From Ophelia neglecta (Eukaryota), in assembly GCA_965285935.1 (NCBI GenBank), contig OZ260666.1, forward strand, positions 48,732,001 through 48,796,000: a stretch of DNA of 64,000 nt. Reading direction: 5' to 3'. The notes beneath the pieces are model-generated. The model worked only from the letters and a program-made list of their open reading frames with translations. It searched no databases and was not told the origin of the DNA. Positions 2 to 54,268 of this stretch are shown here, piece by piece. The stretch's first letter is position 1. Each line of letters begins with the position of its first letter. The position numbers and the translations under genes are program-made.

Positions 2-1180
2 AAGACAAACCATACCAATCTCTGCGAGTGCACCACTATGTTAGATATCTACTGTAGCGGCCTTCAGAAGGTGCCCACATTTTACAGGAACGATATTGTA
101 TACAACGGATTATACATGTCTAGACAAAATATAAGGAATCTCCCGAATGTGGTATTCTTTAATCTTATGGTGAAGAAAATTGAGCTAAACTTTAACCCAA
201 TCGGTGACAATATCGAGGTTAATGCTCTGGCTGGTTTGGAAAGGACTTTGGAACAATTATACATGGGTGGGTGTCGAATAAGGACTTTGCCCACAGGCAT
301 GTTAATAGGACTGGAAGCAATGAAGATTCTCCATTTGTGGGGTAATCAAATTCGTGATCTCCCCCCTAACTGGTTTAAAGGAGCGGCCAACTTAGTGGTA
401 CTACTTTTGTGGGGAAATCAAATCCGCACTGTTGACATCGATTCATTCACTGGGCTCACCAGTCTGCGGACATTAGATTTGGAGAGAAATCAGATAACTA
501 AACTGGACCAAAAAATGTTCCGGGATCTGACAAATCTTCAATCACTACACCTCGGGGAGAATAATCTTATAACTGTAAATGGGGAGACATTTACCTACAT
601 GAGCAACTTAAAAGTACTAAATTTGGATGCTAACGGTTTGGAATTTATTTGGCCAAAGGCATTTGATGGTCTTAGGAATCTAATGATTTTAAGCTTACAG
701 GATAATGCAATCGATCTAATATCGGACCAAGTTCTGGGTCATCTACGAAACCTGTCAGTTCTAAGGCTACAGAACAACCATATTAAGCATTTATGGGCGA
801 AAAACTTCGACGGACTTCGGGCCTTGCAGAGCATAGACCTATCTCATAACATCTTAACTGAGCTGCCCGAAGGTGTCTTTCGGCAGGCACCTAAGCTTTT
901 GGAGCTCTATCTAGACAATAACAATCTTACATCTCTGACCAAATGTATACTTCACAAACGTTCACGCCAAAACCTACGTACACTGTCACTAGTGGGTAAT
1001 CCCATTGTGTGTGACTGCGAAATGTCGTGGACCGTGAATCTACAGGCCCGGGGAGTATCAGTCTGGGGAACGTGTCATCATACCCCGAAGGAAATCCTAC
1101 TCAAACTGACGCCAATTACTTACAAATCAAACTACTACCTGCTCAGCGAACCATGTAATGACAAAGATTGTCGCATGTAA
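2..1180 (+). CDS. Extracellular leucine-rich repeat protein (LRRNT + about 13 typical 24-aa LRRs + LRRCT), 5'-partial, no intron within window
   Basis: The frame is open from base 2 (KTNHTNLCECTTMLDIYCSGLQKVP, an LRRNT CxC...C pattern), so ATG38 is probably internal. Repeats such as LRTLDLERNQITKLDQKMFRDLTN and LKVLNLDANGLEFIWPKAFDGLRN follow. LRRCT is LSLVGNPIVCDC...WGTC...C. TAA at 1178-1180. No transmembrane segment. Confidence 0.95.
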   Translation, partial: KTNHTNLCECTTMLDIYCSGLQKVPTFYRNDIVYNGLYMSRQNIRNLPNVVFFNLMVKKIELNFNPIGDNIEVNALAGLERTLEQLYMGGCRIRTLPTGMLIGLEAMKILHLWGNQIRDLPPNWFKGAANLVVLLLWGNQIRTVDIDSFTGLTSLRTLDLERNQITKLDQKMFRDLTNLQSLHLGENNLITVNGETFTYMSNLKVLNLDANGLEFIWPKAFDGLRNLMILSLQDNAIDLISDQVLGHLRNLSVLRLQNNHIKHLWAKNFDGLRALQSIDLSHNILTELPEGVFRQAPKLLELYLDNNNLTSLTKCILHKRSRQNLRTLSLVGNPIVCDCEMSWTVNLQARGVSVWGTCHHTPKEILLKLTPITYKSNYYLLSEPCNDKDCRM

Positions 1181-52149: not shown

Positions 52150-52204
52150 ATGTTGGCCGGTTTATTGCTGATGGCAACAGGCGTTTGGCTGTCGAGAGTG
52201 AACG
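52150..52204 (+). CDS. Kringle-phosphodiesterase gene exon 1 (signal peptide)
   Basis: ATG..AAC G|gtatta; joins in phase 1 to give VNA-QDC. Confidence 0.8.
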
Positions 52205-54268
52205 GTATTATAACAATAATTCTTGAGATATAAAAAGGTCTAACCCCCCAGAAGATGTGTCTATTATGATAGCAGACGCGATATATTGAACAATCCCATA
52301 TGTCCCACACTAAAATTCACACATGAAACTTATCATTGTGTATTGTTTCTCTTAATGATAGCCCAGGATTGTTACAAAGCAAGCGAGTCCCACCTGTACA
52401 AGGGCACTGTATCCGTGACTAGATTGGGTTACACCTGTGAGAGATGGGACAATCCTAACCCCACGCACAAACGCGCCAGGAATCTTAGGTTTCCCGATCG
52501 CACCCTCTCGGACGCTGGTAACTTTTGTCGTGATCCTGACTATCTTGGACAGGTTCGTCTTAATTTTCTCAGTTTTTTCTGGCCATTCAGATATAATTGT
52601 TATATCTACTTATACATTTATTTTCATAATTATAACTCCTTAGTAAAACACGTAATAACCCGTGGGACAACATAGTAAACCCATACTACCTTCTTGAATT
52701 CACTTCGTCTATTTTGCAGCCATGGTGTTATACGACAAACCGAGCAAAACGCTGGGATAAATGTAATGTTCCAATATGCACCCGTACACAGGAAATCAAG
52801 GAATTGGAAGCACCCTCTAACGTCATTGAACCAGGTAGTGGTTAGTTTCGGGTTTAAACACAGCAAATAGATTTCAACTGTTACCTCTACGCCAAATAAA
52901 TCGTCACTCCTGTTATATTGATGTATGGTCTATATTTTTTTTACTAAAGGACTTGTAAAAAATATAAATTTTAGTTATTTATATGAATGTCATTGGTTGT
53001 AATAAACCGTATTGTTATTTTCTAGATAACGTCGCCGAACAAAGGGCTACCCATGTGGTCCACATTGGCGTTGACGGGTTGTTAGCTTCCTGTGTCCGAG
53101 ACGCCGGAGCTGGTAATATCATGTCCCGACTAGGTGGACAAGGAACGTTCACTCTGACGAACGCGCGGACAGAAGATATCACTACTTCCGGTCCATGTTG
53201 GACGGCTGTTCTTACCGGTTTGCCTATTAACCTGTCCGGAGTGACGGAAAATAAATGGCAGCCTGGCCAAACCACAAAAGTCAATGGCATTACCAATCCT
53301 GTTATTTCACCTTTTCCCACTATTTTTAGCACGCTGAAAATGCAGGAGAGGCGAACCACGACTAGTGCTTTCTACAGTTGGCCCTGGCTTAAGTACTTGA
53401 TGACTAGAAATGACCCAGCATCTGTTGATTCTGAATACCAATCCAAACCTGTAAGAAACGACTACGCCTCGGCGGACTTGAGAACTTTAGACTCTGCCCT
53501 GACACAGCTGAGACGTGTCTTGGCAGGCAGAGATCGCAGCTACACCTTTGTGTATTTCGGCAATGTGGATGTCACTGGCCACGAGCACGGCTATGATTGT
53601 AATTCAGTCCCCGAGTATAGGGATGCTATCCGAACCGTCGATAACCACGTAAGGAACAAATACTCACTGCTTTAAGACACGTTTAAAATCGGTCCATGTA
53701 AGTATAGGGTGTCTTGTGGATGTTCAACTGTCCTTTTTCTGCCTTTGTATGTTTAGGTTGGTCGTTTGCTCGACGTTGTTGACCAGATATCCAGGGATAG
53801 AACCGTTGTGATTCTGAACTCTGACCACGGTGGATTGGGTCGAAAGCATGCCATGCTGAACGATAAGACTGTGCACGTACCAATTTTCATCAGGGGTGCT
53901 GGCATTAAGCCAGGCCAAGAGTTCAAAACAAAGGTAAGAAAATATTTTTTCCCTACGTCGGCCTACACGGTATGAGATCATTAAAGATTTTTCAAGATTC
54001 GCGTTGGTTATTCTCATCTACAGAAATCAAGTTGATGTTGCCATATTACCAAACAAATATTCAAGTAAATTGACTAATCCCAATTTATATGTATTACACA
54101 TATTATATAATGAAATAGACATATATTACACACGTTTTATAATACAAAGCTTGTTTTGTTCTATAGATCCGCAATCTGGACATTGCTCCCACGGTCACCG
54201 CGGTCCTTGGATTGGAACCGTCACCATTTTGGAAAGGCAAGCCTCTGACCGAGGCCTTCGAAAAATAA
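52150..54268 (+). CDS. Secreted kringle + alkaline-phosphatase-superfamily (type I phosphodiesterase/nucleotide pyrophosphatase-like) protein, about 420 aa; join(52150..52204,52362..52552,52720..52834,53026..53648,53757..53933,54167..54268)
   Basis: All introns are GT-AG with compatible phases (1,0,1,0,0); total 1263 nt. Signal MLAGLLLMATGVWLSRVNA|QD. Six-Cys kringle CYK..YKG..TCERW..NFCRDPD..PWCYTT..RWDKC..C. AP motifs HIGVDGL, TTSGPCW..LTG, VDVTGH, SDHGG..H, LDIAPT..LG. Confidence 0.92.
52362..52552 (+). CDS. Exon 2, kringle N-half
   Basis: atag|CC CAG GAT TGT ... GGA CAG|gttcgt. Confidence 0.9.
52720..52834 (+). CDS. Exon 3, kringle C-half and linker (alternative same-phase donor after 52840)
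   Basis: ttgcag|PWCYTTNRAKRWDKCNVPICTRTQEIKELEAPSNVIEP|gtagtg. Confidence 0.88.
53026..53648 (+). CDS. Exon 4, AP-superfamily catalytic domain N-part
   Basis: ttctag|..HVVHIGVDGL..TTSGPCWTAVLTG..YFGNVDVTGHEHG..VDNH|gtaagg. Confidence 0.93.
53757..53933 (+). CDS. Exon 5, AP-superfamily domain
   Basis: tttag|VGRLLDVV..VILNSDHGGLGRKH..VPIFIRGAGIKPG..K|gtaaga. Confidence 0.92.
54167..54268 (+). CDS. Exon 6, AP-superfamily C-terminus and stop
   Basis: ctatag|IRNLDIAPTVTAVLGLEPSPFWKGKPLTEAFEK*. Confidence 0.92.
   Translation: MRNLDIAPTVTAVLGLEPSPFWKGKPLTEAFEK

Follow-up and report, generated by a model that had tools for sequence, protein, structure and literature searches.

The stretch of DNA analysed here, called the window throughout, spans 64 kb of the Ophelia neglecta genome (C9:48732001-48796000; GenBank contig OZ260666.1 of assembly GCA_965285935.1), and its positions 52150 to 54268 carry, on the forward strand, a six-exon gene that combines a kringle with a phosphodiesterase-like enzyme domain. 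The six exons join into a frame of 1263 nt, i.e., 420 codons plus a stop, and a scripted check of the splice sites showed that every intron begins with a GT donor and ends with an AG acceptor. Exon 1 (52150-52204, 55 nt) provides the start codon and a hydrophobic, signal-peptide-like N terminus and ends in phase 1 at a GT donor. Exons 2 (52362-52552) and 3 (52720-52834) specify one six-cysteine kringle, and exons 4 (53026-53648), 5 (53757-53933), and 6 (54167-54268) a domain of approximately 300 residues from the Pfam family PF01663 (Phosphodiest). The signal peptide was called by eye rather than by a predictor, from the hydrophobic core and a V-N-A stretch ahead of the kringle, and the protein is predicted to be secreted. 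Pfam, similarity searches, and trees were run on single exons, not on the spliced protein. A previous sequence-only reading of this DNA had proposed the same layout of signal, kringle, and enzyme. Splice sites, reading frame, and exon-by-exon Pfam matches bear it out, and an architecture of this kind lies far beyond chance; we regard the observation as confirmed.

The two kringle exons are recognized separately by PF00051. Exon 2, which encodes the N-terminal two thirds of the module with Cys 1 to 3, matches profile positions 4 to 55 (E value, 2e-9; 38.1 bits against a cutoff of 34.3), and exon 3, with the C-terminal third (Cys 4 to 6) and a short linker, matches the last 20 positions, 60 to 79 (4.8e-4). 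A tblastn search located exactly one kringle within the 64 kb. The phase-1 junctions claimed for it hold: exons 1 and 3 both end in phase 1 and exons 2 and 3 together measure 306 nt, making the kringle a symmetric 1-1 module with phase-1 introns on both sides. In vertebrate mosaics such as plasminogen, prothrombin, urokinase, and HGF activator, kringles are also bounded by phase-1 introns and stand ahead of the catalytic domain of a secreted protein. The catalytic partner in those mosaics is a serine protease, whereas that of the window protein is a predicted metallo-phosphoesterase. The kringle would most likely tether the enzyme to an extracellular ligand, be it a protein or part of the matrix. 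As regards a candidate lysine-binding pocket of the plasminogen type, its P-D-Y-L stretch, judged by eye, presumably sits where plasminogen kringles have D-x-D.

Within the enzyme domain, exon 4 encodes the first two thirds and matches PF01663 over profile positions 1 to 193 (7e-14; 52.6 bits against a cutoff of 23), with 42% identity to an Owenia protein (P0001). Exon 5 holds the catalytic core with S-D-H-G-G and a downstream His, matches the C-terminal core of the Sulfatase and Metalloenzyme models, and finds 86 family proteins. Exon 6 ends the protein with a D-I-A-P-T ... L-G-L ... W-x-G motif and the stop codon and finds 59; both exons match the same homologues as exon 4, in preserved order. 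The motifs quoted in the sequence-only reading (IGVDG, TTSGPCW, DVTGH, SDHGG, and the later His) are all found in the translation, on near-invariant columns of the family, and together with a conserved Asn they complete the set of Asp, Ser nucleophile, Asn, D-x-x-x-H, D-H, and His. The metal-binding Asp of IGVDG (53073-53075) occupies the invariant column D108 of our family alignment (A1) and aligns to Asp54 of the Xanthomonas nucleotide pyrophosphatase/phosphodiesterase (NPP). The predicted nucleophile is, as anticipated, a Ser rather than a Thr: that of TTSGPCW (53187-53189; invariant column S148) aligns to the Thr90 nucleophile of the Xanthomonas enzyme. The Asn of T-E-N-K-W (53250-53252; invariant column N169) corresponds to the Asn of G-I-V-H-N in NPP, the Asp and His of D-V-T-G-H at the first metal site (53568-53582; near-invariant columns) to D210 and H214, and the D-H of SDHGG (53823-53828) to D257 and H258. 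A further His seven residues past D-H (53847-53849), conserved in at least 90% of the family, is a putative metal ligand; in iPGM, the third ligand likewise comes shortly after D-H.

This comparison places the window protein beside, not within, the known nucleotide pyrophosphatases. It shares the PF01663 assignment and the alkaline phosphatase superfamily core with Xanthomonas axonopodis NPP (PDB 2gsn/7mw8) and with ENPP1-7, and all of the aligned catalytic positions with the former. Unlike these enzymes, it has Ser for Thr within an S-x-P-x-W rather than a T-x-P-N-H motif, and it is devoid of the approximately 100 residues that separate D-H from the last His ligand in NPP; neither SMB nor nuclease-like domains, as found in ENPP1-3, accompany it. 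In single-sequence searches, similarity to Xanthomonas NPP (E value, 0.08) and to ENPP7 (0.21) was weak. The proposal that the enzyme is not an ENPP thus stands, and ENPP membership was rejected on the grounds of the nucleophile, the missing insert, and this weak similarity; its best matches come from the short family treated below. Profile searches named Xanthomonas NPP (5e-17), PafA, and ENPP1/3 as the nearest solved structures. Instead of the window protein, the fold was modelled for P0003, its nearest kringle-less homologue of full length (34% identity). The AlphaFold model, built from a 45-row alignment, shows an alkaline phosphatase superfamily core (predicted local distance difference test score, 95.1; predicted template modelling [TM] score, 0.93), and Foldseek related it with probability 1.0 and query-normalised TM scores of 0.66 to 0.76 to NPP3, PhoK, LtaS-type enzymes, and sulfatases. 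The modelled structure of P0003 is a predicted minimal superfamily core with no close solved relative.

A full NPP/alkaline-phosphatase-like two-metal site combined with a Ser nucleophile leads us to propose that the enzyme would hydrolyse phosphate esters via a covalent phospho-seryl intermediate. Three Trp and one Tyr are near-invariant across the family, which has no near-invariant Arg or Lys. Since conserved aromatics in the absence of conserved basic residues recall NPPs, we lean towards a preference for diesters or nucleotide pyrophosphates over simple monoesters, an inference only. The most likely function is that of an extracellular two-metal, Ser-nucleophile phosphodiesterase or phosphatase, which the kringle would place.

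The search for relatives with exon 4 was exhaustive and returned 510 proteins at an E value of 0.001 or lower, with a top identity of 42%. A word-index search with the same exon was blank owing to length and word limits, and is uninformative on relatives; a profile word search with A1, in which 8000 candidates were scored and several members of its own alignment were missed, was used for names only. Relatives were sorted by their labels and gene context, bearing in mind that representatives at 50% identity hide taxa. Labelled animal relatives are two proteins of Owenia fusiformis, one each of the acanthocephalans Pomphorhynchus laevis and Neoechinorhynchus agilis, and DgyrCDS8898 of Dimorphilus gyrociliatus (P0224; 647 residues). 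As annotated, the latter is a single product with four kringles between the signal peptide and the enzyme. Two Logan contigs from one SRA series (P0009 and P0010, the second 80% identical to the Dimorphilus protein) encode two kringles and the enzyme, each in a single uninterrupted open reading frame (ORF), and their kringles are matched by exon 2 at 1e-19 to 1e-22. Like the window protein, all three place kringles ahead of a short PF01663 domain with every catalytic position kept, and they fall in the same animal clade. The single ORFs are the best available support for kringle and enzyme being parts of one protein, and by extension the kringle exons of the window are predicted to be spliced to the enzyme exons. 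Differences concern kringle number (four in DgyrCDS8898 and two in P0009/P0010 versus one), the uninterrupted ORF of a compact genome versus six exons, and sequence, the enzyme part of DgyrCDS8898 being only about 29% identical to that of the window. No kringle was seen in the Owenia and acanthocephalan proteins; the kringle fusion therefore probably arose within annelids.

Beyond animals, the family reaches Capsaspora, the fungus Ramicandelaber, Perkinsus, Chromera, and Rhabdomonas, and gene neighbours identified further eukaryotic members among metagenomic sequences: P0029 shares its scaffold with Tom22, Det1, and CGI-121, P0164 with split eukaryote-type GCS exons and a RabGAP, and the P0008 gene abuts a eukaryote-type phosphatidylserine synthase. 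P0028 and the copy on L097 lie on giant-virus contigs. L097, a 95-kb uncultivated virus genome from IMG/VR, also encodes a class II aminoacyl-tRNA synthetase and a DEAD-box helicase; of two further giant-virus contigs from ENA, L094 (191 kb) carries Rpb5, an mRNA-cap methyltransferase, and a protein kinase, and L096 (27 kb) an intein-bearing Rpb1. The copies on L094, L096, and L097 are single-domain proteins without a kringle, and outside the animals, two of them rank among the nearest relatives of the worm proteins. In the BFVD, a Hyperionvirus "alkaline phosphatase" (A0A3G5AF19) and a protein of Mimivirus LCMiAC01 (A0A481Z0X3) share the minimal fold (TM scores of 0.76 and 0.79; root mean square deviation of 3.0). 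P0028 differs in having a Trp in place of the later His.

Bacterial relatives come from many phyla and are 26 to 34% identical to the Owenia query. Membership in a short family of some 300 residues that is abundant in bacteria, as previously suggested, is borne out; such proteins are plentiful in Planctomycetota, Acidobacteriota, Verrucomicrobiota, Bacteroidota, and Caulobacterales. Annotated as "alkaline phosphatase family protein" or "nucleotide pyrophosphatase" (e.g., Echinicola strongylocentroti P0225 and Solibacter P0182), they resemble the window enzyme in length, fold class, and near-invariant residues, including the three Trp, yet they are uncharacterised and lack a kringle. The ESM Atlas yielded large bacterial clusters only, of no taxonomic help, and a phage collection searched with a giant-virus copy returned one unannotated match at 26% identity, which is uninformative.

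The position of the catalytic domain was assessed in an unrooted maximum-likelihood tree of 56 rows (LG+C20+F+G4 by posterior mean site frequencies), with ultrafast bootstrap and the Shimodaira-Hasegawa-like approximate likelihood ratio test. Fragments below about 170 residues, the multi-exon C9 paralogues described below, and most of the 80 bacterial loci, which were thinned by phylum, were left out of it. A 100/97 split separates 31 rows on the window's side from 25 others. The 31 comprise the window gene, its C7 paralogue, the other animals, a giant-virus clade (P0028, L097, and P0165), P0008, P0013, and a 12-sequence environmental clade, two members of which are shown by their context to be cellular eukaryotes. 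All 17 labelled bacteria are on the other side, together with Capsaspora, the fungus, and an alveolate/euglenid clade in which another giant-virus copy (P0026) is found. In two quick trees built from different rows, the same split reappeared at 97 to 99, and the window's side stayed free of labelled bacteria after addition of 15 long multidomain proteins, including P0016, confirmed as bacterial by its context. Rooting on a long three-row bacterial group made the window's clade sister to a mixed bacterial/eukaryotic group, not nested in any bacterial phylum. The catalytic domain thus falls outside every bacterial lineage, in a clade whose members are spiralian animals, giant viruses, and small marine eukaryotes. 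The impression of a bacterial-looking domain was right as regards the short family and its abundance in bacteria, and wrong as regards the clade in which the domain falls.

Taken together, these results make it likely that the window holds an intact, annelid-type gene for a secreted 420-residue protein in which a kringle precedes a minimal PF01663 phosphoesterase from an old family of the eukaryote/virus clade. Several points weigh against this reading. The window protein enters the tree as exon 4 alone. The animal group receives moderate support under the mixture model (82/82) and collapses under plain LG+G4, and many rows on the window's side are unlabelled metagenomic sequences, few of which were assigned by gene context. 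All matches to curated NCBIfam models fall far under their cutoffs, for the bacterial as for the eukaryotic members of the short family. As for chemistry, the His at 53847-53849 is a candidate third metal ligand by virtue of its place in the sequence, and substrate class and metals would be extrapolated from distant NPP and alkaline phosphatase enzymes. Finally, the three runs that hold this stretch are DNA-contig runs of one sample with no RNA run among them, and intron 3 contains, at 52983, an in-frame ATG from which a 230-residue ORF runs through exon 4, with 14 codons added upstream of the exon (52983-53025); use of this start could give a product with neither kringle nor signal.

Among other explanations, an old transfer from a giant virus or protist into a spiralian ancestor, or from animals to viruses, with the kringle fusion following later within annelids, fares best, and we hold it to be an unlikely but serious possibility. 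Support of 97/79 unites the virus clade with the animals and two environmental sequences, leaving the small-eukaryote clade outside, and identity to the Owenia protein is higher for the IMG/VR copy (37%) than for the best bacteria (33 to 34%). The placement of P0026 in the alveolate/euglenid clade, the short fold shared by named giant viruses, and the restriction of labelled animal matches to annelids and acanthocephalans all fit such an exchange. However, the tree, being unrooted, gives no direction, nor does it settle in what order the animals, the virus clade, P0008, and P0013 branch; representatives at 50% identity do not establish absence from other animals, and vertical descent with many losses fits equally well. 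The sequence-only reading had named grouping with a eukaryotic clade as fatal to its transfer hypothesis. Such grouping is largely what we find, although a clade so patchily distributed would still be compatible with a transfer in the distant past.

Considerably less room is left for the idea that the kringle and enzyme exons belong to separate transcripts, or that the kringle is an alternative cassette, with the enzyme starting at the ATG at 52983. The DNA-only runs and the 230-residue ORF are compatible with it, as is the kringle-less state of the closest paralogue. Yet the exon phases match as 1-1, and intron 3, which measures only 191 nt, has a polypyrimidine tract and an AG acceptor. Initiation at 52983 would yield a product devoid of the signal peptide; in relatives, by contrast, N termini are hydrophobic, and Cys residues are conserved across the animal sequences. 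The kringle-then-enzyme order also recurs at two other loci of this genome and in the single ORFs of dinophilid annelids. We consider this explanation unlikely and favour a single spliced product of signal, kringle, and enzyme.

The gene shows the marks of an intact nuclear locus. Within the 762-Mb assembly (223 contigs), it is found 48.8 Mb from the start of a chromosome-scale contig of 78 Mb, and the DNA contigs cover its exons and introns and contain no exon joints. These contigs also reveal 13 heterozygous coding sites, 8 synonymous and 5 causing replacements (G/V in the signal peptide, N/I, E/D, E/Q, and R/K), mostly conservative and none at a catalytic residue; the synonymous excess is a modest sign of purifying selection. 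Contamination was rejected, considering the spliceosomal introns and the position deep inside a chromosome. Integration in the host genome is further supported by an animal-type leucine-rich repeat gene in the window. We therefore take the kringle-enzyme gene to be intact, nuclear, and animal, apparently from an annelid, since its nearest labelled relatives are annelid proteins. As a side observation, the leucine-rich repeat gene (window positions 38-1180, + strand) is an intronless ORF of 380 residues made nearly entirely of LRR_8 repeats (E value, 1e-100); the edge of the window may truncate it.

A profile search of the genome identified four loci, including the window gene. Two paralogues lie on the minus strand of the same contig, at C9:66761974-66768000 (L092, L003) and C9:72011204-72016000 (L093, L004), each with approximately three kringles followed by the enzyme, in six and five exons, respectively. 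Both keep the full catalytic set, and in each of them one kringle is split by an intron at the very position of the within-kringle intron of the window gene. The third (L002; C7:79702602-79704500) is sister to the window gene in the tree (100/99) and shares both introns of its catalytic domain; its frames are open, and the 12.6 kb upstream of it contain no kringle. All four loci have their last intron at one and the same position, near residue 275 of P0003. The window gene is thus one of a multigene annelid family in which a variable number of kringles precedes the enzyme. The C7 copy has replaced D-G by D-A, the Asn by Ser, D-H by N-C, and the later His by Arg, and it has lost D-x-x-x-H, which makes it a likely pseudoenzyme or decaying copy. 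Loss of activity does occur in the family, and the window gene might by the same token encode a non-catalytic binding protein or be decaying. We judge this very unlikely: the window copy keeps every conserved catalytic position, its frame is open, its splice sites are intact, and its polymorphisms are mostly synonymous.

The paralogues also bear on the origin initially proposed for the gene, in which a bacterial PF01663 gene entered the animal lineage, acquired a pair of introns, and became fused to exons for the signal and the kringle; a short fold, the abundance of similar bacterial proteins, a best labelled bacterial match (72.9 bits) close to the best matches from the small-eukaryote clade (76.7 bits), and the lack of labelled homologues from well-annotated model-animal proteomes among the matches looked up speak for it, but it is hardly credible in view of enzyme parts of five or six exons with one intron position common to all four loci, the 100/97 split that leaves every labelled bacterium on the other side, the chromosomal position, and the homologues in Owenia and two acanthocephalans and the whole kringle-enzyme layout in Dimorphilus. 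The domain is neither nested among bacteria nor absent from related animals, and because of the split a lineage-specific bacterial transfer is not supported.

The layout is already public, if only as the unnamed and uncharacterised Dimorphilus prediction in NCBI and UniProt, and so is not unique to the Ophelia neglecta genome. Full-text literature searches found nothing that pairs a kringle with nucleotide pyrophosphatases or the alkaline phosphatase superfamily, nothing relevant on Dimorphilus and kringles other than an unrelated astacin review, and, for PF01663 with gene transfer and for giant-virus phosphatases, nothing on the short family. To our knowledge, the repertoire of kringle mosaics has until now consisted essentially of proteases, receptors, and lectin-like proteins, to which this gene adds a new catalytic partner. 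It also indicates that, independently of the ENPPs, a second lineage of alkaline phosphatase superfamily ectoenzymes persists in animals other than the model species. A bolder scenario would be an undescribed class of annelid extracellular enzymes, made of one to four kringles and a minimal Ser-nucleophile NPP-like phosphoesterase, whose enzyme module was acquired by exchange with giant viruses or their protist hosts instead of descending vertically from ENPP stock and whose kringles might target phosphodiester or nucleotide hydrolysis to a specific matrix or clot-like substrate; as a whole, we find it doubtful. Members of the family of about 300 residues occur commonly in bacteria of soil and water, in picoeukaryotes, and in giant viruses, yet none matched a curated functional family; a small, well-folding, secreted animal member would be handy for defining the substrate of the family. 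The gene is also a cautionary case for the study of gene transfer, as an animal domain of bacterial appearance fell into a eukaryote/virus clade after metagenomic relatives had been identified by their gene neighbours.

Bacterial members of the family have accessory modules of their own, which are PA14, LamG, hemopexin, and similar domains, not kringles. P0016, encoded on a 3.16-Mb contig with a Bacteroidota-like context (L101), joins two tandem enzyme domains to PA14 and Fn3-like modules. Its neighbours specify a TonB-dependent receptor, two aminotransferases, an aldehyde dehydrogenase, a 430-residue PF01663 protein, and metallophosphatases, a neighbourhood that looks like one for phosphonate or organophosphate scavenging. 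Another protein, P0034 (518 residues), consists of two tandem short enzymes; its C-terminal motif matches exon 6 at 2e-16, yet it falls on the bacterial side of the tree. In a Bdellovibrionota metagenome-assembled genome (L039:1414-2943), a family member is fused to hemopexin repeats, so that the small enzyme is again joined to a binding module.

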